Shown here one piece after another: positions 1,162-51,223 of a stretch of 64,000 nucleotides of DNA. Where the stretch lies: the NCBI RefSeq assembly GCF_006345805.1, contig NC_043012.1, positions 3,224,001 through 3,288,000 on the forward strand. The letters run 5' to 3'. The translations under genes were made by a program, and so were the position numbers. This stretch comes from Octopus sinensis. Its lineage: Eukaryota. Numbering within the stretch: position 1 is the first letter of the stretch; each line of letters starts with the position of its first letter. A model generated the notes under the pieces. The model searched no databases and was not told the DNA's origin. It worked only from the letters and a program-made list of their open reading frames with translations.

Positions 1162-2279
1162 TATACTTGAATAAATTGAAAATATATATCATCCTTGGGG
1201 GTTAACAGTGTTCATATCCATACAACCTATATGCACACATTCAATAAAGATAAAAAGCATAAATCTATATGCATAAACGCATATATAAATATATTGGGTC
1301 ATCCCATAAATAATGTGGTTTTTTATACATCCTTTACTTTACAAAATTAAAATAAACAAAGTCCATTTTTAATCTCCCTGGCCACATAGTTGGCATGACT
1401 TTTGTTCTATGTGTGGGGTTATAAATTTCACTATGTTCAATTATAATGAGTGTTGGGGATTTTGATTTTTAAGTTGCTAGATGTATTCAGCCAATGAAGT
1501 AGTGGGCCAATTTAGGCTTTGTGTATGAGGGGATGTGTGTGTAAATGTGCTTCTTAAAGTTGTTGGCTGTGGCTTCAACATATTCTCTTGTAGTTGAACT
1601 GGTAATCACTTGACATCTGTAAATGATGCTTTTAGCAAAGCAGTTTCTTTTCAAAGGGTACTCAAGTGTATTTTTATAATAACAAGTTTTAGATGTAGAG
1701 GCTCCTCAGGTTGGATATATCAGTGTCTGATATTTGTTCAGAGCAATTGTAGAAGTATGTGGGAGATATGAAACAGTGTTTGTAGTTAGAGCAGCCAGTT
1801 GGGTTTCATTGAAGGTCATTCTGCACGGAGAGAAGAGGAATTGGGAATGTATGATGCTGGAAATCAGGATCAGTAAAATTAAGAAGTTGACCATCAGATA
1901 TCAGAGGATGTACAACATTGTATTTTTTAGTGTAAAGTTATTATTCCCAGTCATGTTATCTGCAGGGTTGGGGTTGTAGAGTACAATAGCCTAACTATAT
2001 GGTTATTAGATACTTGGTAAATGTGTGTGTATGTGCATACATGTTATGCATTCACATGCGCACATGTGTGTTTATGTGTGTGTGTGTGTGTGTGTGCACG
2101 CATGCATGTAGAATGCTTTTATATAGATTTTTTTTTTAAATCACTAATTATATGGCTATTCAAATATATTTTAACCTTTACCAAGATAAGTTCATTGATT
2201 ATTATTCAGTTTATATTTAAATATATCAATATTGGATTTCTTTGTTTTCTTATATAGAAATTTTAATAATTTGACCTAC

Positions 2280-2417
2280 CTTTCTGGAATAAACTTATGT
2301 GGTTCTGGCCAGTATTCAGGGTCATGTTGAAGGCTATAAATAGATATGTCTATAGGAATGTCTTTCGGAATTATCCAGTCCTTTATCTTAACAGTTTCCT
2401 TGGCATACCTCTGAAGC
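2280..2417 (-). CDS. CYP left exon 12
   Basis: Identical to right (PER). Confidence 0.93.
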
Positions 2418-5400
2418 CTGTATAAATGAACAATAGGGAAAATTCTTAATTAATTGCAATATTTAATACCTAAGAATAATTCCATAAAATATACAGATAT
2501 ATATATTAAAGCGTCTAGCTGACACAATCATTAACAAAACAAGGAAAATGTTTTGTGTTGGGCAAAATGCTACATTCTGAGTTCAAATTCCTCCAGTCCA
2601 TATTTGCTTTTCACCCTCCCCGGATTCATTAAATAAATACTAGCTGAGCCTTGTGGGCCAATGTAATTGATTTACTGATCTCTGAAATTGCTGGTCTTGT
2701 ACCAAAATTTGAAATCAATGTACAGATATATTTACACATCAAAAGCAATAAAATATATTCCCATATTTTAGCAAACTCTTGAAAGTAAATGAAGTTAAAA
2801 TTATTGACTCAGTACTTAAACAGAGTTTTGATCACTATATATTTGAAGGTGATGGTCTGATATGGACACATCACAGCTGAATCACAGACACAATTCAGAT
2901 ATAATAAGAACACTGGAGAAACTCTTCTAGATTCTCACTTCATGTTTGTCTGAGACTGCCTCAATAATGTACAGACCATAATTGCAATAGAACACAATTA
3001 TAAGCACATCATTACTTCACTTTCGTTTGATAATGTAGCATTCTCTTTGAGACAGGAATATGAACTTATACATTTTATGCACAGGATGTTCTGTTATTAG
3101 GGCAATGACTGACTATTACATTTATGTTAATAGTAGGCATCTGTCGGTCTTGGGAGACCATGGATCTATGCCTGAAGAAATCATGTCAGCTGCTGATGGT
3201 GATGCAGCACGTGTTGTGGCTGTATAGGCCCACATGTGAGTGGTTGTATAGGCCCACATGAGAGTGGTAATCATGCATACAACGATTGCATTTAAAGAAG
3301 CTTTCTACAGGTGCTACTGGTTTTTCCTTTCATGAAGTGCACTTTTCTTTGGTTGCAAGTTCCTGTTTGTCTTCCACTTGCTTCACACACTTTTGCAATA
3401 TTTGTCTCCAGCATGGCGATCATTTGCAGTCTCCTCCCCTCTCAGAATGTCCAGAACCATCAACTTCATATCTTTCTTGCAGACGTACTTGAAACAAAGA
3501 TGAGGTTGTGCTCTTGTGCCAATGTCCAATTCTCCATACAGGATGTCCTTTGGGGCTCCCCCTGTCTGGCATGTGAAGTACATTTACATTATATCACAAC
3601 AACAAAGTAGATTTTTGCATGTAAACATATGATGTCATAATTTGTTGTAATGAAAGGTTATAAAATTTGGTACTAATATATATTTCTTATGGAACATATT
3701 TTTAAAAATCAATAAGCGGAAGTATTGATATAAATAGGGAGTTACAGAACAGGAGATATGCCATTGCTATTATTATGTATTTGGTAATATTATGTATTCC
3801 TTATGGAACATATTTTTCACACCAAGTGTAGAATATTGATATGAACATTGGTACTATCATACATTCCTTATGCTACTATTATGTTATTTGGTACTGTTAT
3901 GTGTTTCTTATCAAACACATTTTTGGTACTATTGTATATTTCTTGTGGAACACACTTTTCAAAACAATAAGGGAAGAATATTGATACAAATAGGGAGTTA
4001 CAGAATGGGAGATATGCCATTGAATATTGCAGCTTTCCTTTATAATTTTCTCCTCAAAATTGTTCGTTCACTTTTCAATTACTTGCTCTCTTCTCTTAAA
4101 AGAAGGCCATCAACAACAAGTAGTCTTATATCCCTTCTCTATAGTTTTCATTTGTATTTAAGTAGAATATATTCTATTAACAAACCATACAGTTGATACA
4201 ATTTAATGTGGAATATTCCTGATAGTAATAAATAAAATTCATAATGCATCACATTAGCTCACCTCTTTACAACAAACATTATTTAATTATTTCATGCACA
4301 TGTAAACATTGTAACACTACCTGAGTGATGCAGGATACATTCTAAGTAATTCAGACATACACATATCGAGGTAAGTTAGTGTGTTCAAATTTTCAACCGT
4401 AGGTTCTTCCTGCAAACAAATAAATATCAAATTCAATTCATGACACTGATTTGCTACTGAATCATAAATAAAATAAGTGAAATATAAGCATTTAACAAAA
4501 TACAGTTTAGGATTATGTTGATATTAGATTCACAATAGCTACTGTCATTTCCACACTTTTCTGAGTAATCACAATTGTCTTTGTTCATATTTTAATTTTG
4601 CAACCAAAATAATTATTCTATCTATATTAATATCCAAATAATATTAGTGAATATATATATATACACACACACACAAAGCAGTTATATCACAATCACCTCA
4701 GACATATGCAGCTGAGTAGCCTCTATAGTTAGAAATGTATCACTGGCTTAGATAGACTTCTAAAATAATTACTTTAGAAGTCTATCTAAACCAGTAATTA
4801 GTTATAATTAATGCTAAATTTCTCTAAACATTTGTATTCACTATGACTAGAACTTTTAAGTCACAGACAACCAAAATTTTAGAGTCTCATTAGTGATGAG
4901 CTAACCAATTGCAGATCTCTTGCATTATGTCTTAACACAAGTGCAATTCTACAATACAATACATATTACTTGAACTCAAAACTGTTTATCACATAATACA
5001 GCAGTACACATCACTACAACATCTCTGGTTTATGAATTATTCAGGTATTATTAGGTTACTGACTCGCCAGCACACCAGGTGAAATGCTCAGCAGCATTTT
5101 ATCCATCTTCATATTCTGAGTTCAAATTCCACTCAGGTGTTTTTTGCCTTTCATTCTTTCAGGGTTCATAAAATAAGTACCAGCCAAGTACTGGGGTTGA
5201 TGTAATCAACTTAGCCCCTCTCACCAAATTACTGGTCTTGTGCCAAAATCTTAGGGAAACTTACGTCACCAATGACATCCATCACTTCATCATATACCTT
5301 CTGCTGTATTTCTGGCTGAGTGGCAAGGATATATGAAAAAAACGACAACTCAGTTGAAGTTGCGAAGTGTGAAGCAAATAAGAACAACACCACCTGTGCA

Positions 5401-5586
5401 ACAATTTCTTCATCTGTTAAACCTATATTAATAAAAGATGATAAATTGAGCTTATGTTGCTATATAGTAAGATTGAAATATCCTGAACTAAGGATACATG
5501 TACATGTATACGACAGATAATGGATGTACATATGTATTTGTGTTCATTTTTGATTGAACCTAGTCATTTTACACATACATGATAAC

Positions 5587-5636
<50 letters not shown>

Positions 5637-5846
5637 CAAACACATGCTAAAAGAGATGTGAGGAAAAGTAAATAAATATAATTTATGCTATCTCTCTCTT
5701 TTTCTCACTCTCTGTCACACACATACATACAGCAACACACACACTTTCTCCCCCTCCTCTCTCTCAGTCAATCACACACTTGCTAAAAAAAGATGTGAGG
5801 AAAAATGAATTTAAAAAATGTTCAGTCACCCTGTCCCCTACATCTT

Positions 5847-5915
<69 letters not shown>

Positions 5916-8900
5916 CACTCACTTTAAATTTATTATTCAATTTTCAATAAGCTAAAATCTTAAATTATTAATTGACACATTATTAATTAGCATAATAGCA
6001 TAGCCTGGGAAAAAACATGGATTACATGGAAAAATGCAAGCAAGAGAAATAATATTCTTAAGATTATAAATCTGGAAAAGTTCAGGAAAAGTTATTACAC
6101 TTGGAAAAGTTCAGGACAAGTTATTACGTCTAGTAAAGTATAGAACAAGAAAATTTTTACTTAAAATATTGCAGCTAAGGATAAAATCTGAATATTAAAA
6201 ATTATTTGACTTTAATTTACGAACTAACATGATAATTAAAAAACATACCATCATTTTGTTAAAATAGTGACACATTAGATTACTTAAAAAATGAGAGCCA
6301 GAAGTACCAATATTGCTATAGTTTTATGCAAAGTAGAATAGTATATAAGGTAGGTAAATTCATTATGTAAAAAATAGGTATTGGGTCAAGACTGAAAATG
6401 TGAAGTCTTGGCAATAACTCGAGCAAATTTTACTGTAAATTTGTTGTTATACGTAGATTTTACAGTAATATATAATTAATTTTTGCATTATTTTATTTAT
6501 TGAACTAACTAATTATATATTTTTCATAACCTATTTTCAAATTTCTAATTATTAATCAATAATTAAAAAATTGAATTTTTTTGAAGGGTAAAAAGTATTT
6601 TGAGTTATATTTTATTTTTAATAGAAGTAACAAATGAAAGTAATAACTTGAAATACAATTTTTAGTTTTAATAAAAGCTAATATTTTCTAAATCTAAATA
6701 TCCTATTTGAAATTTTATCCTTAGCTGCAATATTTTAAGTAAAAATTTTCTTGTTCTGTTCTTTACGAGATGTAATAACCTGTCCTGAACTTTTCCAAGT
6801 GTAATAACTTTTCCTGAACTTTTCCAGGTTTATAATCTTAAGAATATTATTTCTCTTGCTCCCATTTCCCCATGTAATGAAACTACTGCTTCGTTAGATT
6901 TGTTTCTTCACACTGGCTTGCAACTCAATTTATGAACAGCTATGTTTTCTAAACAGTGTTTGGATGCTCTCTCTGTTGATTTGTTTTCTGATCTGGTTGA
7001 ACAAACAACTACTGTGTTGTGCTGGTTAGAGGACAGATATCATTATTATACCAATACTATCAGCCTTCCTTAGATAACTTAATTGCTTTTGCACATGTTC
7101 ACTCTTATCTGATAAGATTGCCTAAGAACCACTGTTTCTAATATCTACATCTTTCTCTTTCCCACGGACTTGTTTCATTTTTATCTGACATTCTGCTTTT
7201 GCATTTATATCTATAATTGTGTCTGGTGACTGCATTATGTATCTGCATGAGCTCTCCACTAGTTGGCATGAATGTTTCACTGTTCTCATTCTGCTCTCTG
7301 TCATGAGACGCAGAGAGCAGAATGAGAACAGTGTACCTGCTGTGGATCAAATAAAAGGTGAGGTCTGAAATTCCAATACAACAACCAAGTAGAACACAAG
7401 ATATCTGAAGAAGGCAGGAACATACAACAGCTGAAATGTAGTGAAAGCAACAATCAAGATGAGTACACCAGTTCAACTAATGTAAACAGTCAAATTTTAT
7501 ACTGTTTAAGACACCAAAGACCTTACAGGTTTTCATGGTACTGGTGATTAAGACATAATTTCAGACAACTGTTTGTCTGGGTCTTACGGAAGCAGTAAAA
7601 CCATAGCACAGAAAAGCACTACGCACCCTTGTGCATTGGTAAAGATTTTCACTGGCATATGTATTGCCATCAAGCATGCATCATGTGCTTTTTTTGGTGG
7701 TAGTTATAAATTACTATTGTACCTTCATGGTTCAATGATAGATTTCTTCCTAGTTAAGAGATTAGTTCGAGTGAGTGGTACTTATGTGCATACACATAAA
7801 AACGATCATGCACACACAGATATATATATATATATATCAATATACACACACAAATATATATAAATATATGTGTGTGTGTATATCATCATCATGATCATCA
7901 TCATGATTATCATCATTTAACGTCCGTTGTCCATGCTGGCATGGTTTGGACGTTTGACTGGGCTAACATGCTGGAAGGCTGCACCAGACTCAAGTCTGAT
8001 TTGGCATGGTTTTCTACAGCTAGATGCTCTTCCTAATGCCAACCACTCCGAGAGTGTATTTGGGTGCTTTTATGTACCACCAACATGGGCACCTAAAATA
8101 TGGTATCCACACCCAATATTGATTTTCCATCTTTGATCTCATTGTTGTTTACATGAGGCATGAGGGATATGAAATGTCAGAGCAAAATAAGTGCTGGCTG
8201 TATTTTCTACAGAAAATCTCTAGAGATAACCTTAACCTTAAGTGATGTAGTAGCACTGCTAACACAGTAGAACACAGGATTGACTTATCAAAATGTTTAA
8301 TATACTTTGTAGTATATTATGGTTGCATAATGAAATATGGTGTGCCCACAGATCATTACTATTCATATTTAGCTGATGAGACACAAAACTCTAATGTATT
8401 AGAATATTTATTTTATCAGATCTTAATAATGCCCAAATATTCTCACTGAGATCCATTATAGATTATTGCTCACATATCAAATATGGTGCTGGTACTACTA
8501 CACACACACATATATAGACATCCTAAACATTGTCCACAAAAAGGTCACCCAACTCACAAGCAGACTCCAGCCTCTGAAGCAAAGACATGCTGAGTTATAT
8601 TCCTCAGCTTTTCCTTTTGCTACTAAAATAATTCTTGCTTCTTTGAGCATCTCCTCTGAGCATTTCCGATTTACTCATTTCTTTTTCCCTCTTTCTCTGC
8701 CCAACCCCAATAGATCCAACACTAGTTATTGTGCCTTCAAAATCCCTTCCCTGATCATGTATTTTCTGCAGATGTTGATTTGCAAAAGTCATTTTCACTC
8801 TGTTCTATGTACACACTGACATTACCCTTCCAATGGAGCATACTGGCTTTACTTCCTTCAAGATTTGCATGTCCTTTGTAGTCATAGCCCATGTTTGACA

Positions 8901-11900
8901 GCCATGTAGCATAGCTGTACATACACAGGCATCATACAATCTGCCTTTCACTTTGAGGGAGAAGTGCTTTGTTACCAACAAATGTAGTAGCTCTTAGAAC
9001 TTTACCCGGCCTATTCTTACTCTAGCAACTATGCTTTTAGAGCTTCCTCCATCACTGCTAACTTGGTCTCAAAGGTAACAGAAGCTATCTACTACTTCTA
9101 AGGATTCCTGGGCATTGCAGGAAGTCTGTTCTCTGCACATTCTCAGTGTTTATTGTACCCACACATTTGCTACACACAAATCTATTTTCTCTGTTAAACT
9201 TCCCATGACACCACTACACCTTCAATGTGTTCAAAGCTTGCACTAAGTAGTTTCTACTAACACATTTCTTACATATTGAGCAGGGCTGTCTCCTTGAAGG
9301 GATTTGTGATTCATCTGTTTTCCCACTTAATAAGGCTTTGGTCTTTTCTCAGTGAATTTCTGCAGAATACTGCATCTAAAGCGTTCATATATATTTTGTA
9401 TATCAAACCTATATTTCAAATAATCAAAATTTACTTGCCTCTTTTTGACCTCCAGTCACTCATGTTCTCAAATGTGAGTGTTTCCAGTTCGTGTTTCATA
9501 TCATCATCAATTTTATCAACATTTTCAAGTTTTGCATCCAACAAAAGTTGGAGAAAATCATGTCTTACCTAAAACCAACAAGAAAATCTAGAAATATTAA
9601 ACAGCTGAATAAAATTACTGAGGTTTTAATATAAATATTAGGCATTCTAAGTACTAATTTTAGAAATATCCAATCACTGGATTTTACTGGTAGATTTTTT
9701 TGGACAAGTGGAACATTACTATGAATGAGATGTATATTGTGATATGGCAAAATTGCGTTTTGGTATTCTATAGACATATGATGAACAGAGCAGTAACATA
9801 GAAAACTCCTTTTCAATTTCTTGTAAATTCAGTTAAATAGAAACTGTAATAAGGAAATGCAGAACATATATTTCATATTTTTCAGTAGACAGTATATAAT
9901 TCTAATTCTCACTGTCTAATCTCATTTCCTCACTAGAAAAAAATGTTTTTCTTGCTGGTTATAAAAAACATTTTAAAACACATTGACTGAAAACATACTA
10001 TGAAATGCTCAATAACATTAAATAAATTTCAAATATTACCGTTTTATTTTTTCTCCGTTCTGCTATAACATCTTTGGAAAACATAGAGATAGAGTGCAAT
10101 GAACTGGAAAAGTTAGTGTTGATTCCGAAAGTACCCAGAATTTTTGGAATTACTGGAAATAACACTGAAACAACAAATGCACAGGCTAATTAGTACAGTT
10201 GATTATATTGGCGATAAAAATTTGTATTCCATGTAATAAACCAATAAACCTTAGCAGTTTTCTTGAAACGAATGATATACATGTTAATAAATAAACTCAC
10301 TGATCAAAACTAGAAACTTATTGAGAGTTCCTTTGTTTTTAGTGAAATCAACAATCAAAACAGATCCAAATGTTCTCAACAAGCTTACGTTCTATTTCAG
10401 ATGAAACTGTTTTTGCCTGTTTTGTGTTGATTTTGTAGAGGTAAATATTGTAAATGCAATGAAAGATAGGCTAGGTGCCTTGCTATCTCTAGATTTGTTC
10501 AATAGAAAGTGGAATTTTCTGGAGAGAAAACAAAAGGCTTCAATTTAAGACTTTCTAGAGAGTTTCAAAAGGTTAGTGTTGTATAATTCATGTACCTGAA
10601 GAGTGAAGTGCAATGATTTATTTATATATAAAGCCGAAAAAGGAGCTTAATTTCAGATTATTTTGTGACCAAAATAAAGGGATATTGTGATATTATCTGT
10701 GTTATTAGGCATCATTGATCAGAGCAGAACACCTGAGCACAGGAGTGCTCATTCCAACCTGTTATCTGCCCATATAGACAGGTGCACCAACATATAGCAT
10801 AGATAAATTAACAACAACTAGCTGAAGCATCGTTCAGTGAGAGATAAACATAACTGCAATGATGTCTGAGTTTGGCTTTTCTTTCTTTTCTGTATATTTA
10901 TCATAAATACAGTCTTTTATCTAATGTATAGAGGTTAAAATTTACACACACACGCGTACAGAAACTCATTTAAACATACATCGATACAAGCACACACATG
11001 ATGTGTGTCACTGCAATACACACAGTTAGCAACAATGAGGTCATATTCATTCAATAACATATCTTAAGAGAATAAGTAAATATTTACTTTGAACAGAAGT
11101 GATCGGGTCATAAAAATTGACATAAAAGAATTTGTCAAAGCATTTTATTAATGCATGATCTGGATTCTTCTGTGAATTAACTTCGATGCCAAACGCAGTA
11201 GATGCAATCATATCAACTGTGTAATGTGAAAATACTCTGAAATGAAAATAAAGAAATAAGAAACTAAAATAATACTAAAACTCACTTTGTTCTGCTCTTT
11301 TAAATACATTTTAATTGGGAACTATTGTTGTGCATTGAGTACATTTTAAAACAAAAGCTATGCTACTAGTATGTGACGTGATGGTATAGATTCAATTTAC
11401 AGGTTAAATTATTTCACATATCTTACATTGATAATAATTATTGGAAATGTATCAATTCCAGTTTTTCTCTCCAAATACAAAGCTATCATGCATAGTGAGA
11501 AAGACATGATTTCTTTTTTCCTGCTTATTATAAAATTAACAAATTGCTTGTAATTTTTCACTTCAATGGGTCAAATACCTACACTGGTGCTTTTTGGCAT
11601 AGACAGTACAATCCTTACTCTGCCTCAGAATGCTGAACCTTTCAGAAAGAGATGACAAAGGACCAAGATACCTGGCACCTTGCTGTACTCAAGAAGACCT
11701 ATCCTCCACAGCAGAAGTGTTATGGTAGCATTCGCTGGTGAAGGGGATTGGCCTGCAAAAGTCCTGTGCGGTTGCCATATAAAAGCAATTGTGTTGGTGC
11801 CATGCTAAAAGCACCCTACACACATTGTAAAGTGTTTGGCATTAGGAAGAGTATCCAGCTGTAAAAACCAAGCAAAATCAGACTGGAACCTGGTGCAGCT

Positions 11901-14900
11901 CTCTGGTTTGCAAGCTTTAGTCAAACTGTCCAACCCATGCCAGCATGGAAAATGGACATTAAAGAATGATGATGATGCTATAATAGTTTATACAAACATG
12001 GTTGTGTAACTTGGTTAAGGATAAACACTTTATTTGACATCAATACATAAACACTCTTACATACTTACACATAACAACAAGAACAACACAAAAGTAAATC
12101 AGTTTAAACAGAGTCACTCACTGTTTCATTTCAACAGCTTTGTCACTGTCAGCAAAAAGAGAAAAGTTTTCTTCCAGGTTTTTCACAACACTATTCATAA
12201 TTCCCATTGTCTGAAAGAAATTGAAATTCCCAAAATTGTTCTTATTCTTTTCTCATGGTTTTAGTTTTACTGCTGTAGACGTTTAAGACAGTTGATTTTC
12301 TAATAATTCTTGAAAATATGATTCATGTTATCTCCTCATTTTAACAATTCTCACAACATCTACGGTCTACATTGGTCTTCTGACAGAAGCTAGTTGTTGT
12401 ATACTATCTCTGCTTAATGCCACATGAAACACCTCCTCTTGTCACACCTACTGTATCTTTTCTTTAAGAGCTGCACTAACCATTCAGTCCAATAGCTTTC
12501 CCAGTGAACCAATAATCTGGAATTCATTTCCTACCCTTCCTTTCCCATCAGTCATTGAATTACTGAAATACATTAATACCTCAGGTCGTTGAAAGCCAGC
12601 AAACATTTGTAAAGATCAATCCTCCTAATTAGGCCATTAGAAAAAAGGTATATTAATTAGTTGAATCAAATTCATTCTCCCCAACACAATTATAAAGTTA
12701 TGTAATTGACATAAATAAATGTGGTGAAATCTTATGATGAAAATGTATATCTTATAGGCTTTTATTAAGTCAATGTGTCAGCATTGAAGACTTTCTCCAT
12801 ATAGTATATGGAAAATAAGCTTGGTAGCAACAATATCTGAGTTTGCTGTAAAGAGGAGTCTTGCCCTGACACAACAGATGCTCTTTGTAAAACTATTAAC
12901 ATTATGATTTGTTAGATAATTACAGCTTATTACCTTTAACCAAAGCTATAGAGCCTCTTGTTTATCAACTAATGATTCAAGGAAAGGAAAAATAATATTT
13001 AAATGTATTAACAACATATTTTTAATTTAGAATAAGAGGAATATAATTTTCATTAAAATTAAGACTATATGAAATTAAATAGAATTGATCTTACCTGTTT
13101 TAAGTGACTGGTACTGAAGGTTGGGAGTAGTACAGTACGGGTAAATTTCCAATGATTGTCTTTGAGAAAACTTATGAATCGATCACTAATTTTGTTTTGT
13201 GGCAATACATCCTATAAAGAACATGTGACATCTGATCAAAGTGAACACACCATGAAGAAGACATTACAAAGAAATAATTCCATCTTACTTTGAAATGAAA
13301 ATAGAGAGAAAAGAGGAGAAATATGTCACATTTTGTGGGGAAAATGAGAAAAGTCAAAAAGATTTCTGAATCTGCAAATCAAATTTTGGTGAGGATAATC
13401 CACTGACAAACAACATTGTCAGTGAATAAAATCTTTTTGCATTGGTAAAAGCTATAGTCATATTAGCTTAATAACCAAGTAATTGAAAATCAATGATCCT
13501 GGTAATTGATGAGGACCTAGAAATTAACCCATTACCCTAGGGTCATGGCAAATGCTTTGTCATCTCAGACATGTACAAAGTTTATTCTAAGAACCATGAA
13601 TGATGATTAAACAATTTAGTGTTGTTGAATTTTATCAGCATTGCTATCAGAGATGATATGACCATGTTTACTGCTAGAAGTCTGGAGGGAAGCTTCAATT
13701 GATTCCATCAGCCTTTATCTTGAACAAGTGTAAAGAAAGATGTTTATGATAAATGCATGTTTATCATGGCCAGAGGATTATACATGTCATAATAATCCAT
13801 ACTGATATCCTCACTCACAAACACTTCTCGCCTGATACAATCATCCCATCACACTGATGCAATTGGGAGAGGAATTGAATTTTCACAAGTGTAACTTCAG
13901 TTACTCTCATCCCTGGTAATTACTATGATCAACACACAAATCCTCCACATACACTTGATGTTTCTTTCATTTACAAACCCAACCTCTGCCATATCAGACA
14001 CTAACTTTGTATCAATTTAGTGGTAAGAGAATTATATATCTCATAATAACCCATAATAATCCATCATCACTCACAAATACTTCTTGGTTCTCACATTCAT
14101 CTGAATATGCTGATAATGCTAGTGGAGTAACTGAATATTTTACATTTGTAAATCTTTTACATCAGTTAGTTTTGTCTTCAACAATTGTCTCTTTTCAACA
14201 CGTGAATACTTCAAGTACCATCAATTTAGTTTTCAGCCACACGCCCAACCACTGCCAAACCAAAATTGACTCTGTTCCCATCTCAAGGCAAGGTCTCTTC
14301 CTTATCACAACTACCCATTACATATCTATGTACTATGCATCTATCCTCAGATCTCCAACTCCATAACATTTCAAGTCAACTGGTTCTACAATTCATATTC
14401 TAAATATGCATGATGACACATGTACTTGTAACCTATCAGAAACAACTCATCTTTTCACTGAAACCATCTTCTTCAGTATATTTCTCCACATCCCACACGC
14501 AACGAAATTTCATAATTTTAAGTACCCAAAATCATTCACTCATTTTGGGCTATGCCACAGAATTTCAGCAGAGAAAATGACCTAGGCACAAACAGAATGG
14601 AAACTCTCATAATCAACAGACTTCTCCAACATGAATATCTCTCACTCCTTATTTAACGTTTGTGCAGTTTTCTTATGGCCAACTCAATGGGAGAACTTCC
14701 CTCTTATGCTATTCAGCTGTAGGTCCACATCTTATTGAAAATCTGTTAATGAGGCAAGAAAAGAAAGCTTATGTTATTTAGATGCATGCCTGGATGTAAA
14801 ACATCTTAAATTTTAAAAAGTAAACTTACGTATCTGTTTGTAAATACAGCAAATTGTTTGATGCAAATTTCTTTAACCATTTCTGGGTCACTGATGAGTA

Positions 14901-17900
14901 TATGAGGTTGATTACAAATGTAAAATCTGTAAAAGTAAGAAAACATAGGAAAATTACAATTCAAATTTTCATATCTGTTCACAAAATTGCATTGTATATC
15001 TTCCGGAACTTATAACATGATTGGTTTTTGTGTCGACAGGATGGACAGTAAAATGTCCACAACACTATCTGCATCAAAAAAAGTGACTGTTAGCATATTT
15101 AAAGTTGGAAATAAAACAATTAAGAAGAAATAACTATAAAAGAATAGAAGAAAATATTTACTAAAGATTAAAATTAAATGAAATTAAATAAAGCTACATT
15201 TCTAATGGAACAACAACGATCAATGATTAATAGAAAATATGAGAGAAACAGAGATATCACTGGCAATACAACTGCACTGGACACATGGTCATAAATCCCT
15301 GACACTGTTACCAAATATGTAAGGACATGCATGTGTATGTATGTGGTGTGCATGTGTTTATGATCCTGTGAGTGTGGAAGCATTCCAGTATGTATATGTA
15401 TCCAGGCTATGGACAAGGAGCCAAATCAGGCACTGCAGTTGATGTGACCAGCCACATTAACACTGACACACACACACACACACTGAGAAAGGCTAAAGAG
15501 CTAGAAGCGTGCATGTGGGAATCTGCTAGATGGAAGCACTGAATTGATATGGTGTTTTTACACCTTTTATCATAAGAGAGAATTATTTTCCTCCATGGTG
15601 ACTGCAGTGAATTTGCCTTTTGAAGCTGAAATATGTGGCAAAAATATTTTAACTAAATTAAGGTTCATCTATTCCTAATCACTGCCTCGTGCTGATACTG
15701 CTATTTTCATTCCATCCACTCGTGCAAGGTAGTCACTGATGTTCACTGCATTATTTGGTTAAAGCTATGGCTCTGAATTTGCCTAGGGTTATGTCTCTAG
15801 GGTATTTCCCTATTGAGGAGGGCTAAAGAACCAGAAAAGAGCCAGAAATGTGCTTATGATAAAAGGTTTTTACACTTTTAACATAAGAGAGAATCTTTTC
15901 CCCATTGCAACTGCAGTGAATTTGCCTTTGTAAGTTGGAATGTGTCACTAACATATTTTAACTATCCTAAAATTCATATTTATCTATTTTCATGACCCCA
16001 ATTGCACTTCAAGAGGAATAAACAATAAATGTACACACTTAGTCATCACATCAGAATGAGATATAAACTGTTTAAAATGTTCGTACCCTAATACTTTTCC
16101 ATATTTCTGTTTCATTTCTTTGTCAAACTTTGCCATTCCCTAAAAAAGAATAACTAAATTACAATTTCAATATAGAAAGGTTTAAATACTTGTTTTTTCA
16201 CTCCTCCAAGATAATATTTTTATGAATAGTTTTGTATTAATAAGCAAATCTAGTTTCATTTACATAAAGATCCAATCACAATATTATTATAAAGAAACAA
16301 AGTAAAGAAAAAAAATTAATGGAGTGGGAGGGATTAAGCAGCAGAAAATGGGTGTGTGGAGAACACTTCTGGAATAAAAGAGTACAATCAAATTCTGCCA
16401 CCATTGACTTTACATTTCACCCTTTTAGGGTTAATAAAATAGGTACCAATCAAACACAGGGGTTGGGGTGGGGGAGAATAATCGACTAATCCCTCCCCAA
16501 AATTACTGGCTTTGGGCCAAAATTTGAAATCAATATTATACACACACACATACACACACACTCACATATAAACCAAGAAAATGAAGAGTTTCTACTGGTT
16601 GGTAAATTTTAAAAAGTACAAAGAAGAAAATGCTCCAGTATGACCACAGCCATATGACTGACACGAATAAAAGAATACTATTTTTTGTAGCATTTGTAAG
16701 TTTCTTCATGGGATATCATGCGCTCAAATATGTGCATTTCTAAATTACAAAGTGTGTACAGCTCAAAATAACTGCAAATTGGGACCTTGAAATTTCCTTG
16801 AAATTTCCGTGGCTGATAAGGAAAATGCTAAAACTTATGTAAACTATTAAAATGTGAGAATTTGACATCTAACCAGTAACTGTTAGTGCATTGGTACACA
16901 TTGAATTCTAATTTATACTTTTGCACCAGAAATATACAATACAAGCGATGTGCCACTCTTCGTTGCGGCAACCCCCGCGTAAGTCTCCATGACCGAGGGT
17001 CGACGCTCCTTCTATAAAAAGTAACGACACACAGCGACAAGAGACTCGTGCAATTCGATCCTGTTCCATCTCTTTCTACAATTTTTCACTTTTTATTTTC
17101 ACTCTTTCACACAATAATAACGTCTGACTCTGACAGCAATACATCAGGTACTCAGTTGAAGCATCTTTCGAGAAAACAGACATTACATACAGCTAAACTT
17201 CATATAGATACTTAATGCTAGCTAATTAGCAAATAATCTTATGTAAAAGCCGTGCACAGCTCCATCTGGACTATTCCATTTCTGCACTTAAATTTTATTT
17301 TTTTATTTATTCCCATTCCTGTGAAACCACTTATTCAAGTTCAAGTCATTGATGCGATTTTATACCAATAGCTATTTTTACTTTTTTTATGTTACGATAA
17401 TATTATACTTTAGTTTGATTTTAATTATTACTTACTACATATAATTCAATTGTTATTGTGAAAGCATCTGACATAAAATAGAGAAATGTTTTTGTTTCAC
17501 TTTTAACACATTATACTGAAATAGTGGAGAAGATATGATATGGCTATGGGCTCGCTCTAGGTAAGAAGTTGAACATTTTTCTTGCCCATGAAACTACATG
17601 GACCCTAAGTAAGGCATCTGTAAAATTTGAATGAAATTGGTTGTGTAGTTCTCAAGTTTTAGGGAAACACACAGACAGACAGACACACATTCTCAGTTTT
17701 ATATATAGAGAGATATTCTAAGAATATGAGAAAGACTGATTTTCCATAATATTTATCCCCAGGGTGTGAAGTGAAGCCATTGCTTTTAATATTAAAACAT
17801 GGATCAAGGCAGTGACATGGCAGAATCATAACCATGCCAGGCAAAATGTTTAGTGGCATTTCATCTGTCTTCATGTTCCAATTTCAAATTCCAATGAGGT

Positions 17901-20900
17901 TGGCTTTGCCTTTCATCCTTTTGGGATCGATAAAATAAGTACAAGTTCAATGCTGGGATCGATGTAATCAATTCATCCCCTCCCCCGAAATTGCTGGCTT
18001 TGTACCAAAATTTGAAATCAATATTAAGACATGGATCAAGGCTGCAAGCTGGCAGAAACCTTACCATGCTAGGCAAAATACATTTCATGTGTCTTTATGT
18101 TCAGAGTTCAAATTCTACTGAGATTGATTTTGCCCTTCATCCTTTAAGGGTCAATAAAATAAGTACCAGGTGAACACTGAAACACTGGCTTTATGCCAAA
18201 ACTTGAAACCAATCTTAAGACATGGAGCGAAATAGAAAGGAAATGCGAGGTTGTAATTTCCTGTTTTCAATGAGGGCATAAGAAGTGTGAAAGGATGGAA
18301 TTGTTTGCAAGGGTGAAAACTTGTAATTTCCCTTCTGGATCATTGATACGTGCTTAAAAAATTCTTTTCAAATTGTTATGTAGGATGATGGAGTTCTATA
18401 AGTGAGGAAAAATGTCAAATTGAATTGTTCCCAGTGTATTACTGGTACTGATTTTACTGAATCAAAATGATAAAATACCAATCATTAAACCTTATTGTTT
18501 AAAGTAAAGAGTAAGATTATATAAAAATAACAAGAAATAAATAAAAAATATCTACTTTAATAAATGCCAAATCAACACCGACAACAATTATGTTTAGAAT
18601 GCTGAGAAACCAATCACAATGCAAAATTTTAACTACCGTATACACTCGCAGATAGGTCACACCCTTAGTTTGGGGTTGTCAAAGTAGGTCACACTATAAT
18701 CTGAGGAGTTACAATGGCCCCCTTTATAACGTAAATATAACTAATATTTCTTAAACATTATCAAATATACATCTTTATTTCAAAACTTTGCTTATAAATA
18801 TTAAAACATTTTGTGGAAGTGACTTTATGAAGGTAGTCTGATTGATAAATCTACTTCACCATTGATACACTGCCATCTACTTCAGATAAGTTGCAGCCCT
18901 GATTTTATCAAAATTTTTGGTAAAAATAGTGCAACCTATATGCAAGTATACATGATAACTTTTATGTCATTCAGCTATCTAAGTCTATCAAACAAGGTAC
19001 ACATAGGGTATGAAAAATTCCAATGCCACCTACCTTCTTCATGAGTTGTAACATATTTCCAAAAAAGAACCATGGCTCTGGGCCAGGAATATTGATGTTT
19101 TTGAAGTAATCATATGGTTTTTTTGCCAGTCTAATATGTAATTGAAAAAACATTGCATTTAAGATTATTGTAGATAAATACTGTTTATAAAATTTAGAAA
19201 TACTCGAACTAAAATAATTAAACTAGTTTATAATGGAATATAAAATAGATTCAATCATATAAATGCACTCACTGCTTTCGATTTGAGAAATGTTGAAATA
19301 TGAGATTTATCCATTGTGTTGTTTTAGAAGTGTGCACTTAGAATTTACAAAATCTACTGACATTATTAACCTATATCTTTCAGTGAGAAAGTGGTCTGTT
19401 CATAAAAATCTCAAAGTATTATTTGAGTAATGATAAGTCATCATCATTACTATTGCCAATTAAAGTTTGTTCTCCATGCTGGCATGGGTTGGATGTTTCA
19501 GCAGGAGCTGGCCAGCTACAGCACTTGCCAGTTGGAGGGCTGCCTGAACTTGTTTATCTGTTTTAGGCATGGTTTCTATGGCTTTACAGAGTGTACTGTG
19601 TGCTTTTAACAGGATACCGGCTCGAGTGCTCTTACATGGCACCGGCTTGGATGTTCTTACATGGCACCAGCTTGGATGTACATTTATGCAGTAGTGGCAC
19701 ATGTGTTTATATGTGGAACTTGGATGGGCACTCTTATGTGTCACTAGTACGGGTGCTTTTATGCAGCCCCAGCACCTGCGAGTCTGCGAGAGTAGGATCT
19801 CTTAGCTGAGAGACGGATGTAAAGGACAAGCCTGTATGTATGGATGGCCACAATTTTACTTAGCTTCATGCGTCTTGCCTAGCACAATACACTGCTTAAT
19901 GTCTCAGTCCCTTGTTGTCCCTTCAGTGAAGCCCAACATCTGAAGATCCTTTCTCAAAATTTCATCCCACATGTTCCTTCCTCAGTTAGAGATTAGCAAT
20001 TCTTGATGCAGCTGTCCTCGTCCATATGCATCATATGTCCATATCAGCACAATCTTATCGTTCACTACATCTAATGTTTTATATACCCAACTTTTTTTTC
20101 CAATCACTTACACCATCATACATGCACACTGACATTACCCATCCAGCAGAGTATGCCGGATTCATTTCACGTGTTGTCAGTGGTCACAGCCCATGTTTCA
20201 CTGCCATGTGGTACACTGGATTTCAAGGATTGCCAGAATGTTCTGAAATGTTTCTCAAACAGACTTCTTTCATTGGATTTATAATTTCCAACCATCTACA
20301 ACAGGTATTTTTTGAGTAATTCGAATATATTTCGACATATACATTAATTCTTGCTTTAAGAGTTTAGACAGTAGCTAAAATGAATGTTAGATAAATACAT
20401 AGGTACAGTGCTGGCCTATAATGGATGAAATTGTTTAAAGAAATGCAAAACATTAGCTTCTAACTTCTCTCACAAAAGTCAAGACAAAACTGTTTATAAA
20501 CTAGTGTAGTATCATGACAGGGTATTTTATGCTCAACAGCATGTTTGATATGCATATTATATAGTAGAAGATTAGCATATTCAGAAGGCTCATCATCGTT
20601 TAACGTCCGCTTTCCATGCTGGCATGGGTTGGACGGTTTGACTGAGGACTGGTGAGCCAGAGACCACACCAGGCTCAATCTGATCTGACAAAATTTCTAC
20701 AGCTGGATGCCCTTCCTAACGCCAACCACTCTGAGAGTGCAGTGGGTGCTTTTACGTGCCAGCAGCATGAGGGCCAGTCAGGCGGTTCTAGCAACGACCA
20801 TGCTCAAAAGGTGTTTTTATGTGCTACTCACACAAGAGCCAGTCCAGCGGCACTGACAAAGACCATGCTCGAATTTTGTTTTTCATGTGCCACCAGCACA

Positions 20901-21535
20901 TGTGCCAGTAGAGTGACACTGGCAATGATCACACTCGAATGGTGCTTTTCATGTATCACTGACATAGGAGCAAATTCATGGCCCTGGCAACGATCATGCT
21001 CAGATGCACTTTTAACATTCCACTGACACGAGTGCCAAGCAGTCAGTACTGTCATAAACACAGATAGCGTAGACTCTTGAGTGCCACGATATGTCCTTAC
21101 TAATAGCGTTAGAGACCTAATGGAGAGAAATTTATTTTATCTTGGAATGAAATTTGCCCGTAAACTCCGTATTCTGTCGTGCATTGCAGTAAGAGGTGGA
21201 CAAAAGTGTGTAGAAAGTGAACTCATAGAATTAACTCTTAGAACATTTTAATAAATTAGCTTTTAAATTAGCTTATAAGTATAAACAATTAATTGATATT
21301 TAAAAATGGTCATAGTGAGTATAGAAACTTTAGTCGTAATGAGAATACAAATGCTTTAGTAATAACGTTAGTATAAATATTTTAGTAATTTAGTTGGTAA
21401 AAGATTTTACAATTCGAAGTTTGTGTAATTTTTTTCTGAATAAAAAGTTGATAAATTTACTTACATATATAATAGCAGAAGAACAATTGAGAGGAGAACA
21501 CAATTCGGTATAGTAAAGAAGCTGAGGGTATCCAT
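2280..21535 (-). CDS. CYP3A-like: Cytochrome P450, clan 3 (CYP3A-like), left copy; exons 1-12 open; exons 13-14 not in window
   Basis: Exons (minus): 21535-21465, 19130-19034, 16139-16087, 14926-14830, 13211-13095, 12210-12122, 11236-11088, 10164-10040, 9568-9439, 5422-5265, 4409-4321, 2417-2280. Frame is open throughout and splice sites mirror the right copy. Confidence 0.92.
3135..3600 (-). mobile_element. RTE-like LINE 3' fragment (mirror at ~53545-54010)
   Basis: PKDILYGEL...CKKDMK C-terminal RT-adjacent motif. Confidence 0.65.
4321..4409 (-). CDS. CYP left exon 11
   Basis: Identical to right (ELLR). Confidence 0.92.
5265..5422 (-). CDS. CYP left exon 10 (I helix, FLFASHFATSTEL)
   Basis: 158 nt, open frame through ATQPEIQQKVYDEV. 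Confidence 0.92.
5588..5910. repeat. (CT)n microsatellites with a duplicated ~45-bp unit
   Basis: Direct reading. Confidence 0.85.
6021..6878. mobile_element. Foldback/MITE-like element with ~170-bp imperfect TIRs (left arm only)
   Basis: 6021-6190 is the inverted complement of ~6712-6878; short internal repeats tggaaaagttcagga. Confidence 0.7.
8650..9260 (-). mobile_element. LINE RT fragment (mirror at ~49550-50180)
   Basis: Degenerate FCYLGDQVS...KVKGRLYDACV...LHG reading. Confidence 0.7.
9439..9568 (-). CDS. CYP left exon 9
   Basis: Identical to right, same GC donor. Confidence 0.87.
10040..10164 (-). CDS. CYP left exon 8
   Basis: 9 nt / 7 aa differences from right. Confidence 0.88.
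11088..11236 (-). CDS. CYP left exon 7
   Basis: 3 nt / 2 aa differences from right. Confidence 0.92.
12122..12210 (-). CDS. CYP left exon 6
   Basis: 2 nonsynonymous differences from right. Confidence 0.88.
13095..13211 (-). CDS. CYP left exon 5 (DVLPQNKISDRFISFLKDNHWKFTRTVLLPTFSTSHLKQ)
   Basis: Same length and splice sites as right; 12 aa differences. Confidence 0.92.
14830..14926 (-). CDS. CYP left exon 4
   Basis: Identical to right exon 4. Confidence 0.92.
16087..16139 (-). CDS. CYP left exon 3
   Basis: Identical to right exon 3. Confidence 0.9.
16942..17713 (-). mobile_element. Non-autonomous Helitron, intron 2 (left copy)
   Basis: 5' TC(TC)TATATATAAAA, (ctgt)n, 3' hairpin then CTTG|T. 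Confidence 0.7.
19034..19130 (-). CDS. CYP left exon 2
   Basis: Identical to right exon 2. Confidence 0.92.
21465..21535 (-). CDS. CYP left exon 1
   Basis: Identical to right exon 1. Confidence 0.9.
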
Positions 21536-22798
21536 TGTCTTAGAATTTGCTGATGAACGACTGTCAAAATCAATATAGAAAAGCTAACTACACAACTGTT
21601 TTCATCATATAACTAATGTCGGCTGTAATAAAGTTAACATCAAAGAAAAGTCAAAATAATATCGGATGAAAAAGAAAAAAAGATTGCTACTGAAGTATTT
21701 CTAATTTAAGCAGAAGGCTAGCGATTTTATGGAGAAGAGGTAAGTAATATAAACGACTTCAATACTTGACTGGTATCTCAATTTATCGAACCTGGAAATT
21801 TACTGTTAAACAGGGCTTGATTTGAATTCAGAACGTTAAAAAGCGATAATGGATATTGCGAGTTATTTTGCAGACGTTCACTAAAAATTAAATTAAAAAA
21901 CCAGTAACAATTTAAGGGCGTAGCTAAACTCGCAATTTGTTAAGCGACGTACAACCCGTCACTCCACCCAGCCATTTAAAACCCTCCCCTTTCTTTTTCT
22001 TTTTCATAGTAATTTAATTGTGATTCAAATTACGTAATTAAAATTACAGTATATTTGCAAAGCGAGTTTTTTTTAAATCCTCCAACTTAGTAAAGAATGT
22101 TGTGACCTGAACTGCTTAATGTTATCTAAATAATATTATATACTGATATAGACGGTGGCAGGTCAAAGAATCTGCAAATAGAGATTAGAGATAGGAGAGG
22201 AAATTTAACATACGAGAAAATACAGTAAACTGCAAAAGTATATTGAAAAATTTATACTATCAATTAATAAAATTCAAATATCAAATATAGTAAAGTCCAA
22301 AGTAAACGTTCGAGAGATCTTTTACCTGTCAGAAATAGTATCGAGGTCTCTCAAGTTTCCATCAATATCTATAAATCTGAAATGCAAAAAGTTTGTTTGT
22401 CTCGTTTTGGCATTTGAACAGGTTAAAGGGCACTGCATTGATTCCAAATTTAACAGGGACATGTAGAATGAGGTGAGGATGAGAGTGGGCTAGGTTAGAA
22501 ATCCATATCTTAAAAGGTGTGGTTATTAGGGCAAAAAACGCACACTTTGACAAGTCTTCTCCCATTCTTTTATGTGTCTGTCTTCCTCCGTTTCTCTCTC
22601 TTTCCTCCCTTCCTTTCACGTTCTCTCTATAACGTCGTTTGACAGTGTCTACTATCTTTCCCCCGCCGCCTTCACTCTTTTTTCCACATCCTCTCTCTCT
22701 ACGTCTGTCTGCATTCATAGAGAGAATTATTATCGCCACAAGAACCACACAATCATGAGAACAAATATTTTGTTGAATTTCTGCTGCTTTTAAATAAA

Positions 22799-22845
<47 letters not shown>

Positions 22846-25200: not shown

Positions 25201-25698
25201 TAATTGCTCTAGGATGATTACTAAATTTGCTAATGTACTTAAGATTGGTCAACGGTTTACGATATTTTTTCTAAAAATACTCTAGTAAACACGGTTATAG
25301 AGCGAGCATACAGATGTAAGCATTGGCAAAAACACACATTTAGTGCATATAAGTAATCTCTATAATTATATATAATTTAAACTTTAATTTCCTTTATATT
25401 TAACATTCACTATTGGTATCCATACTCTTTCTGTTAGCTACTTATGACGTTATATCATATAACGTTTTTTTAAACAATATTAATAGCGTTCTGTCAATCG
25501 CTAAACAAATCCATCATTTTTTGCTAAAATGTCGTATTGACGAGTTTCGTTTTTTTTCACTTTCCCGAAGAGAAGATTGCATTGTTTATACCATTTATTC
25601 TTTTGAATAGTATCAGTGGAATTTTCGAAACATGTGTCGAAAGTAAAAATATTTGATTTACACTGCGTTAAACTCCATTTATTTATTCATATATATAT

Positions 25699-25699
<1 letters not shown>

Positions 25700-25781: not shown

Positions 25782-25785
<4 letters not shown>

Positions 25786-30708: not shown

Positions 30709-30779
30709 ATGGATACCCTCAGCTTCTTTACTATACCGAATTGTGTTCTCCTCTCAATTGTTCTTCTGCTATTATATAT
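30709..30779 (+). CDS. CYP right exon 1 (MDTLSFFTIPNCVLLSIVLLLLY)
   Basis: ATG, hydrophobic anchor, AT|gtaagt donor, 71 nt; joins exon 2 in frame. Confidence 0.9.
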
Positions 30780-31869
30780 GTAAGTAAATTTATCAACTTT
30801 TTATACAGACAAAAATTACACAAACTTCGAATTGTAAAATCTTTTACCAACTAAATTACTAAAATATTTATACTAACGTTATTACTAAAACATTTGTATT
30901 CTCATTACGACTAAAGTTTCTATACTCACTATGACCATTTTTAAATATCAATTAATTGTTTATACTTATAAGCTAATTTAAAAGCTAATTTATTAAAATG
31001 TTCTAAGAGTTAATTCTATGAGTTCACTTTCTACACACTTTTGTCCACCTCTTACTGCAATGCACGACAGAATACGGAGTTTACGGGCAAATTTCATTCC
31101 AAGATAAAAGACATTTCTCTCCAATAGGTCTCTAACGCTATTAGTAAGGACATATTGCGGCACTCAAGAGTCTATGCTCTCTGCGCTTATGTCTTCGTTG
31201 ACATCTTCTCCAATTGTCAATTCCTCTTGTATCAACATCTCACATCATCAGTACGCTATGTGCCTTTGTTTATACAGTAGAACCTCGCAATACGAGTGCC
31301 CCATTGTATGAGTAATTTGCTGTACGAGCCGAGACTCGAGCGAAATTTTGTCTTGAACTACGAGCAAACAAATCGTCCCATCTTTAAGGTAATTCAGTTA
31401 ATAAGACCAGTTTACATATTTCTTTTGCATTCTCTTTTTTATAATTGTCATTTTGCTTGTAACTACACCTTCTCTGTTTTAACAACTCATAAAAAAATTA
31501 TTTTTGAGTAGTTTTGGGGGTTCTGGAACAGATTAATTATATTTTAGTTAATTTCAATGGGGAAAATTGATTTGTAAAGCGAGTAAATCTTAAGACGTGC
31601 TCGGTCATGGAATGAATTAAGTTCGTACTGCGAGGTATCACTGTATATACATTTTTTGTAACACTTGAGCATTTGAAAGTGTTGAACTTGTTCCAATTTA
31701 TAAAATTTATTTTCTAAATCATACGACATGAATTGGAGCCGCTTATTTATTTTTTGTATTCATCTTGTAACTTAATGAAACAGTATGAAATGTTCTGGAT
31801 TAATCAACCCCGCCTCTACTTTGTTGCTATAACAACGTCTCTACTGAGTTGTTCTGAAGAAAGAGAGGT

Positions 31870-31900
<31 letters not shown>

Positions 31901-33522
31901 TCATGATGTGTGGGAGAAAATAGAAACCCACAGTAAGCGGAGACATACTGGAAACATCGGGAGACTGTTGGGATAGTCTGTGAAGGACAGCCTAAGACTT
32001 GGCGATTATAGTACCAATAGGTGGAAATACACCAATACCAGGGGCAGGAGTGCAAAGGATCCTTGGTTCAACTGAGGAGGGTCGTTGGGTGAAGGCAGTA
32101 GGACTTGCTCACCAGGGTCAATGGATGCAGTGGGACCAGACACTCAAATGTCCACTGCCTTGGAAGGAACTCTGGAACACTGACCAAGGAAGATTGGCCT
32201 ACTTCCCTCGTGCTGTCACTGATCTCTTGCCAACCTCAAACTATCTTAAAATATGGAATAAAGAAAAAGACTCATTCTGCAAGCAGTGCGGGGCAACTCT
32301 TTGCACTTTGAACCACATTTTGACCGGATGCTCTAGGGCTTTGGGAAACATGACAAGGTTCTTGCAGAAATCGTATAGTGGACTTATATGCAAAGGGTGA
32401 AGGCTAATAAACACCACCCACCTCCAAAAAAGGGTACCAAATTCCTAAAGATAGGTGACGAATATCATAAGACGAAAGCAATGAAAGGCGCCTTGTTTGC
32501 CATTTTGCGTTAAGCATCAGACTGGGAGATGCAAGTTGGCCCGAGGGGTAGACTTGTTTTTCGAGAAGAGATAGTGGTAACCTCACCTCAACCAGAGATG
32601 TTCTTGCTCTGCAAGTTCCTGCATCGTGGTCGAACTTACAGTGCCCTGGGAGGACAGACTCGATATTTCCCACCAAGTAAAGAAATCGAAATGTCTGGAC
32701 TTAGATAACAAGGCTTTGTCAAGGGCTGGCTTGCAGCCTTATTTCCACTGAAATCGGCTGCCGCAGCTTTCCATGTTGGTCGGTCTGCTATTTCCTGCAG
32801 AAAATAGGTCTGAGACCCAGACAACTAAAGAAAGCCATCGAAGAAACAGGCACATCTAAAACTAGAACAAGATAGCTATAGCTGATAAGAGACCGCAAGT
32901 GAAACCCTTCGGTAGGTGCTCTGCTCAGATGAAGGTTACCGGCAGAGGGGTCAGCTAATTGCTTCACAACGTGCGGATTCGTTATTTTTTTCTTTTTACC
33001 TGCGTAAAAAAGTGTGTTACTATCTGGGAGATCTTTACGGTAGCAGAAAAGGAATTTTTACTCCTATTTCTAAATTCGGTGCGTTGTGAAGGAATTAGCT
33101 ATTATAGAATATTTGTGTGTGTATATATATATATATACAAAATTAGAAAATGGAGAAACATACTTAAATTAATCAAACATCAACCATCAGATAATACCCA
33201 ATCAATACTTTATTACACCATTACATAACAGCAAAGGCATTATACAAAATATATTGTAAATATAATTAGACAAGGAAATAGAAATATAAAATATAAAATA
33301 TAATATATAATTATATCATATCTGACAGCTGTTTCGGCCGTGAGGACAAGTATGCCTCATTTAACCTATAAGCCATATAAGGCAGGTATAAATGAGACAT
33401 TAACAAGGATGTCCCACGGCCTCTTCAGAGAATTTAATTTATTATAAGTGTGAAAAATTTTTTTTACATATAAATATAAAAATATAAAATATAAAAACGT
33501 GTGCATAGACACTCATAATTCT

Positions 33523-33561
<39 letters not shown>

Positions 33562-51164: not shown

Positions 51165-51223
<59 letters not shown>

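Follow-up and report, generated by a model that had tools for sequence, protein, structure and literature searches.

An Octopus sinensis clan-3 P450 duplicate without an acid-alcohol pair in its I helix: probable re-tuning of the substrate pocket

A 64,000-nucleotide stretch of the Octopus sinensis genome (NC_043012.1, positions 3,224,001 to 3,288,000, hereafter the window) carried two head-to-head copies of one cytochrome P450 gene, referred to as the left (minus strand) and right (plus strand) copies. The left copy, RefSeq model XP_036365728.1 ('cytochrome P450 3A7-like', 516 amino acids), read ASHFAT in its I helix where human CYP3A4 reads AGYETT. It is an intact, inverted-daughter P450 of clan 3, and we predict, with a probability of about 0.55, that it encodes a functional heme-thiolate enzyme with a substrate pocket that was re-tuned once the gene had been duplicated. 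Loss of the I-helix threonine appears to belong to a rebuild of this pocket and not to decay. The left copy falls among known kinds, namely P450s that have no acid-alcohol pair and P450 duplicates that diverge at their substrate recognition sites (SRS); by itself it reveals no new mechanism or enzyme class and gives no evidence of new chemistry.

The I helix of the left copy and its ancestral state

The reverse complement of window positions 5265-5422 translated in a single open frame to LTDEEIVAQVVLFLFASHFATSTELSFFSYILATQPEIQQKVYDEVMDVIGD. As this stretch was bounded by an AG acceptor (...tatag, at 5422) and a GT donor (gtaagt, at 5265), it is a minus-strand exon of 158 bp (exon 10). Its I helix, FASHFATSTEL, matched FAGYETTSSVL of CYP3A4 with no gaps, and HMMER likewise paired FASHFATSTELSF with the solved CYP3A4 chain FAGYETTSSVLSF gap-free. 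In the standard CYP3A4 numbering, A305 and T310 were retained (A326 and T331), while G306, Y307, E308, T309 and V313 were replaced by S327, H328, F329, A330 and E334, respectively. The left copy departed from the classical acid-alcohol motif (A/G)Gx(D/E)T(T/S), with Phe at the acid and Ala at the Thr position (codon GCA, window 5363..5361). Although RNA editing in cephalopods could recode nearby codons, it has no means of making GCA encode Thr again. An earlier reading of the window, made without database searches (the sequence-only reading), had listed the G>S, E>F, T>A and V313>E changes, and the gap-free alignment bore it out in every detail.

Orthologs from O. bimaculoides (XP_014772532.1) and O. 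vulgaris (CAI9733869.1) both read FAAHLTTSTAL, and the right copy (XP_029646589.1) read FAADLTTSTAL. These three proteins had the same 14-exon structure as the left copy, were 85-92% identical to it with an unchanged heme loop, ExxR and PERF, and, like it, had neither the Gly nor the acid in the I helix, where they read AAHLTT or AADLTT. They kept Thr at the position of CYP3A4 T309, whereas the left copy had Ala together with S327, F329, E334 and 12 replacements in SRS1 and the F'-G' region. Four base changes (GCA>TCA, TTA>TTC, ACA>GCA and GCG>GAG) set the left copy apart from these three and gave four derived replacements (A327S, L329F, T330A and A334E), while the fifth difference of exon 10, CAC>GAC (His>Asp), arose in the right copy. 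As both orthologs read AAHLTT, loss of the Gly and acid from AGxET predates the divergence of these Octopus species. Of the pair loss claimed in the sequence-only reading, the absence itself therefore stands, but the acid and Gly had already gone in the Octopus ancestor and only the loss of Thr (Thr>Ala) and its three neighbours (A>S, L>F and A>E) are new in the left copy.

Few catalytic residues of P450s are as conserved as the I-helix threonine. A motif survey was built from the 150 best cluster representatives of 1.84 billion proteins, 28 first-search matches and cluster members, giving 232 I-helix motifs from 181 clan-3 relatives. The T309 position was occupied by T in 204 motifs, S in 18 and A in 2, and the E308 position by E or D in 207. 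Two low-scoring or shifted alignments aside, both residues were missing in XP_036365728.1 only. For the sequence-only reading, frequent occurrence of the motif in characterised mollusc monooxygenases would have spoken against the idea; among the mollusc relatives it was uncommon, and 222 of the 232 clan-3 motifs kept Thr or Ser. The other Ala case was a Logan transcript cluster (P0081 and P0182-P0186), of which five members read AGYDATANT and a near-identical sixth AGYDTTANT; the difference may reflect a polymorphism between Thr and Ala or two paralogs of very recent origin. A separate Octopus CYP3-like orthogroup (P0089, P0193 and P0194) read AAYENT (Thr>Asn, acid kept) in O. bimaculoides, O. 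sinensis and O. vulgaris. With this motif conserved across the three, the octopus clan-3 expansion contains more than one instance of a non-canonical I helix. Two further Octopus paralog groups and cuttlefish relatives displayed AGHETT or AGYETT.

The protein of the left copy matched Pfam PF00067 (E = 5.4e-96; bit score 322.6, curated cut-off 22.8) over profile positions 2-456 of 462. Its Cys-ligand loop FGIGPRMCIG (Cys462, exon 13) agreed with the consensus FxxGxRxCxG and was of standard length, and the ERR triad was complete (E382-L-L-R385 and P436-E-R-F439). These motifs and the C-helix W127/R131 all fell in invariant columns of a 25-sequence alignment; ExxR, PER (at the end of exon 12) and the frame proved as intact as the sequence-only reading had stated. 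The heme-free AlphaFold2 model (mean predicted local distance difference test score, pLDDT, 84.5; predicted template modelling score, pTM, 0.85) displayed an unbroken I helix over residues 313-344.

The top 50 Foldseek matches were all CYP3A4, 3A5 or 3A7 (template modelling scores 0.79-0.93, 33-37% identity). Against solved structures, HMMER of the full protein placed CYP3A4 first (E = 1.9e-97); CYP3A4, 3A7 and 3A5 were found at E = 1e-90 to 1e-97 and the next family, CYP4B1, at 1e-40. The placement as a cephalopod clan-3 P450, also proposed from the sequence alone, was thereby confirmed. CYP family nomenclature asks for more than 40% identity. Since identity to CYP3A4, 3A5 and 3A7 stayed below this threshold, the left copy is a clan-3, CYP3A-like P450 that does not belong to family CYP3 in the strict sense, despite its RefSeq name '3A7-like'.

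Distribution of changes between the two copies

The coding sequences of the left and right copies differed at 42 positions and by one indel. Intron divergence (about 1.5%) was taken as the neutral yardstick. Seven exons (1-4, 9, 11 and 12), totalling 675 bp, carried no difference, against 10.1 expected at the intron rate (P = 4e-5). Exon 5 (left 13095-13211, right 44010-44126) differed at 19 of 117 nucleotides and 12 of 39 codons, with intron flanks 1.7-2.3% different. In exon 10, the 5 differences in 158 bp (window 5372, 5369, 5364, 5363 and 5350) all fell within 23 bp and the rest of the exon was substitution-free; the simulated probability of such a 23-bp cluster anywhere in the coding sequence was 0.007 at the intron rate, but 0.096 with all 42 coding differences placed uniformly. 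Flanking introns were 1-2.5% different. Counted over 300-bp intron flanks, the difference was mostly 1-3%, and homology broke beside exons 10, 13 and 14.

Exons 5, 8 and 10 accounted for 27.8 non-synonymous differences against 4.7 expected (P = 2e-13). Among left-lineage replacements, 16 of 17 lay in SRS1 (B-C loop), the F'-G' region (SRS2/3) or SRS4 (P = 2e-11), the SRS segments being drawn generously and partly chosen after viewing the data. As neutral decay would scatter changes, this spatial pattern points to constraint on the scaffold combined with selection making or protecting differences in the pocket. Gene conversion and purifying selection appear to hold the copies near-identical outside sharp, exon-confined islands in which most differences change the amino acid, and ASHFAT appears as the SRS4 island, laid on an ancestral Octopus AAHLTT motif that already had no acid. 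In exon 5, derived changes were seen in both copies, with codons differing at two or three positions (AAT/TTA, CGA/AAA and AGT/GGG).

Predicted function and competing explanations

Under pocket re-tuning, the left copy would still bind heme and use O2 and P450 reductase, while protons would reach the iron-bound oxygen via a non-canonical route. Candidate proton sources would be the neighbouring residue Thr331, the newly gained Ser327 in the groove position, ordered water, a substrate hydroxyl, or the likewise new Glu334 one helix turn along. Such a route would probably lower coupling or shift the enzyme to peroxo/hydroperoxo-type reactions. P450eryF (CYP107A1), which works by substrate-assisted catalysis with a substrate hydroxyl completing the proton relay, has Ala at the Thr position, as does the left copy, but keeps the preceding acid, which is Phe in the left copy. 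Both P450eryF and P450cin are natural monooxygenases and exceptions to the conserved Thr (PMC9366932), and are bacterial enzymes of a lineage unrelated to the left copy. Human aromatase T310A keeps 36% of its activity via alternative proton relays (PMC9366932). CYP114, from bacterial gibberellin synthesis, naturally misses the acid, as the left copy does, and still hydroxylates with a changed reaction outcome (PMC10293830); it retains the alcohol residue, however, and is bacterial and ferredoxin-dependent.

Several observations weigh against this prediction. Synonymous differences in exons 5, 8 and 10 were also raised (5.2 against 1.3 expected, P = 0.002), and for that reason part of the islands may be older divergence that gene conversion did not erase, and not rapid adaptive change. 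The ratio of non-synonymous to synonymous substitution rates (dN/dS) between the copies over the whole gene was 1.33, from counts too small to be informative alone, and the 18 non-synonymous against 6 synonymous changes on the left branch would, taken alone, be compatible with relaxed constraint; it is the placement of the changes along the gene that is informative. The chemistry proposed for the left copy is deduced from its sequence throughout, and that sequence is supported by one assembly only. No transcript-derived copy of XP_036365728.1 was found in the protein collection, and a literature search on octopus CYP3-like genes, this accession and CYP3A4 T309A returned nothing specific, with no paper on XP_036365728.1 or these octopus genes.

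The missing transcript-derived copy would also suit a redundant duplicate in decay, in which Thr>Ala and its neighbours were tolerated damage and the poorly coupled enzyme would leak H2O2 behind a frame not yet broken. We regard this as possible but doubtful. A near-invariant catalytic residue has been lost and dN/dS is about 1 or above on recent branches; neutral decay would nevertheless have scattered changes instead of leaving the 675 exon bases untouched and placing all but one of the replacements within SRS segments. The reference list of PMC9366932 includes the P450cam T252A mutant as uncoupled, a precedent for crippling by this replacement, whereas the splice sites, open reading frame (ORF) and heme-binding residues of the left copy are all intact and the frameshift, as assembled, sits in the right copy.

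An enzyme that activates no O2 and needs no reductase, and instead rearranges or uses fatty-acid hydroperoxides, an endoperoxide (prostaglandin H2, PGH2) or H2O2, was one of the two options, next to substrate-assisted catalysis, raised by the sequence-only reading, and appears unlikely. CYP5A1, also a clan-3 member, keeps Glu in its motif (AGYEIIT). CYP74 P450s carry an insertion in the Cys-ligand loop, and CYP152 peroxygenases have, in place of the acid-alcohol pair, an Arg-Pro that binds the fatty-acid carboxylate; the left copy has neither, its loop being standard in length and sequence and its pair positions Phe329-Ala330. Having no I-helix Thr, a trait of endoperoxide isomerases of the CYP5A1/CYP8A1 type, was found in the left copy (Ala330). 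The proton-delivery pair is wholly absent, the sole such case in the survey apart from the two alignments mentioned, and three SRS segments were remodelled at once, both of which would fit altered chemistry. However, Thr>Ala is one of the replacements clustered in the three SRS segments of a young paralog, and such clustering typically marks substrate re-tuning among P450 families of the detoxification type. CYP74, CYP5A1 and CYP8A1 have a non-canonical oxygen-binding groove in the I helix, as does the left copy, and these enzymes need no O2 or redox partners (PMC10813956); a missing pair has also been linked to alternative reactivity (PMC10293830). The nearest relatives of the left copy, by contrast, are ordinary Octopus CYP3-like genes keeping Thr, and the acid was lost already in their common ancestor. 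Furthermore, the loss of Thr is recent and the neighbouring Thr331 is retained, the best fold and full-length sequence matches (E = 2e-97) are CYP3A monooxygenases, and a microsomal P450 Thr>Ala mutant is still an oxygenase (PMC9366932).

A peroxide-using enzyme would thus be allowed by the sequence, which does not favour it. Conversion of an octopus CYP3-like monooxygenase, after a recent duplication, into a reductase-independent hydroperoxide or endoperoxide converter or a peroxygenase, with no O2 activation, is quite improbable; if true, CYP5A1/CYP74-like chemistry would have arisen independently and at a datable point, with the Thr-keeping AAHLTT orthologs as a natural 'before' state. The sequence-only reading thus holds for a cephalopod clan-3 P450 with an intact frame, a missing pair and a rare motif, while the loss of that pair is partly ancestral and falls within a wider divergence of the pocket.

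It is highly improbable that gene conversion of a short tract from a different paralog brought in the 23-bp cluster at once, or that the cluster is an artefact of assembly, instead of arising through stepwise selection. The tightness of the five differences would fit import, as would the codons differing at two or three positions elsewhere, a possible sign of templated events, and the mosaic left by gene conversion in introns. Yet one of the five is a change of the right copy, no SHFAT donor was found among the other Octopus CYP3-like paralogs or other representative sequences examined, and no further copy of the 30-mer turned up in the window or the three comparison loci described below. Long-read errors, for their part, are usually indels and not clustered substitutions.

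To our knowledge, only a few animal microsomal P450s have naturally lost this Thr, most of them long ago (CYP5A1, CYP8A1 and the CYP7 family). The loss in the left copy is young, polarisable and set in an intact gene, with Thr-keeping orthologs in two sister species that differ mainly in three pocket segments and a Thr-keeping sister paralog that is frameshifted as assembled. A young, polarised loss with Thr-keeping orthologs makes the locus a natural experiment on how a CYP3-like enzyme functions, or alters its chemistry, when the acid-alcohol pair is missing. The two copies also illustrate selection holding substrate-site differences against gene conversion. Among other young P450 duplicates diverging at substrate recognition sites, insect CYP6ER1 and CYP6P4a/b pairs likewise went through recent duplication followed by amino-acid divergence (PMC9249207 and PMC11657943) and are tied to a selective agent, insecticides; in the octopus pair, divergence is concentrated in SRS regions and the conserved Thr is replaced.

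Gene structure, inverted duplication and the right copy

Three loci were used for comparison: a locus (L001) from the O. sinensis chromosome record CM016874.1, overlapping window positions 1-31535 with zero mismatches, and the corresponding loci of O. vulgaris (L002) and O. bimaculoides (L003). Threading XP_036365728.1 on the DNA gave 14 coding exons (Table 1), with AG/GT at all junctions except for a GC donor after exon 9. Splice sites and exon lengths were identical in the O. bimaculoides ortholog, and in that of O. vulgaris except for an alternative first exon. The GC donor (AG/GCAAGT) was kept in both O. sinensis copies (window 9439 and 49381), O. vulgaris (L002 28194) and O. bimaculoides (L003 23106). 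One I-helix exon was found per copy, and no second, mutually exclusive one.

Table 1. Coordinates of the P450 copies and associated features (window positions unless L001 is indicated)
Feature	Position	Strand	Remark
Left gene, coding exons 1-12	2280..21535	-	XP_036365728.1 threading
Left exon 1	21535..21465	-	
Left exon 2	19130..19034	-	
Left exon 3	16139..16087	-	
Left exon 4	14926..14830	-	
Left exon 5 (B-C loop, SRS1)	13211..13095	-	Divergence island
Left exon 6	12210..12122	-	
Left exon 7	11236..11088	-	
Left exon 8 (F'-G' region, SRS2/3)	10164..10040	-	9/125 nt differ from right copy
Left exon 9, GC donor	9568..9439	-	
Left exon 10, 158 bp, encodes I helix and SRS4	5422..5265	-	Translation, AG/GT bounds, protein threading
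Codons A326-S327-H328-F329-A330-T331-S332-T333-E334 (CYP3A4 A305-V313)	5375..5349	-	
Left exon 11, carries ExxR	4409..4321	-	
ExxR motif ELLR, exon 11	4352..4341	-	
Left exon 12, PER at its end	2417..2280	-	
Left exon 13, heme loop FGIGPRMCIG (Cys462)	L001 37170-37332		Outside window
Left exon 14	L001 38966-39040		Outside window
Left promoter-proximal arm	21053..22366	.	Partner 29838-31191, 91.6% identity
Right (parental-position) paralog XP_029646589.1, 14 exons	30709..59158	+	I helix FAADLTTSTAL at 51773-51799
Right exon 10, 157 bp (left: 158)	51726..51882	+	1-bp deletion between 51824 and 51825

Exons 13 and 14 of the left copy were present and intact in the chromosome record, 5.6-7.5 kb to the left of window base 1. 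Left intron 12 spanned 7.9 kb, its right-copy counterpart only 2.0 kb, and it was because of this longer intron that both exons were missed in the window; homology between the copies broke at window 1363 and 55799. The sequence-only reading had held that absence of these exons would mark a decaying pseudogene, and a truncated pseudogene, suggested by the lack of a heme exon in the window and the end of homology at 1363, was rejected given the intact exons beyond intron 12. Left intron 9 was also longer than its right partner (4.0 against 2.3 kb). The extra intron sequence (window 1-1362 with L001 29257-37169, and window 5499-9438) had no right-copy homology and no ORF of at least 120 amino acids; in both introns it presumably consists of insertions of degraded repeats.

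The two copies formed an inverted duplication with aligned blocks mostly about 97-98% identical, extending over window 1363-22366 against 29838-55799, with related segments at L001 40793-49040 and L003 6560-10000. In O. bimaculoides, the DNA between the upstream TPR gene and the P450 was homologous, in inverted orientation, to the DNA past the 3' end of the left copy, and the right copy retained the downstream synteny. This synteny pattern identifies the left copy as the inverted daughter, whose insertion point lies upstream of the parental gene at a distance of about 1.3-2.4 kb. No second copy was found within 10 kb upstream in O. bimaculoides.

At 12 coding sites, the right copy and O. vulgaris shared a derived state while the left copy kept that of O. 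bimaculoides, and O. vulgaris held both arms of the promoter-proximal inverted repeat. Both observations place the duplication before the split of O. sinensis and O. vulgaris, and a duplication specific to O. sinensis after that split was rejected on the same grounds. The protein collection contained no O. vulgaris protein for the left copy; the start of locus L002 corresponds to window 22588, which leaves a gap of about 1 kb to left exon 1. Intron site patterns were mosaic, the left and right copies sharing derived states and being the closest pair in some introns, and the right copy and O. vulgaris in others, which argues for ongoing gene conversion between the copies.

As assembled, the damaged copy was the right one and not the left. 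One C was missing in right exon 10 (CTTGCACT vs CTTGCCACT), a deletion leading under canonical splicing to SYILALSQKYSRRYMMK and then to a TGA stop 12 codons later. RefSeq XP_029646589.1 keeps 12 out-of-frame residues, and its exon 11 junction is not GT/GC-AG. Either the parental copy has recently become a pseudogene through this deletion or the assembly is in error here.

An 8-kb spacer (window 22400-30700) separated the two genes and was GC-rich around 26-30 kb. Its long ORFs, such as 27666-28328 (-) and 24595-25149 (-), had no Pfam match and resembled transposon remnants, and the spacer was conserved at 97.4% in O. vulgaris.

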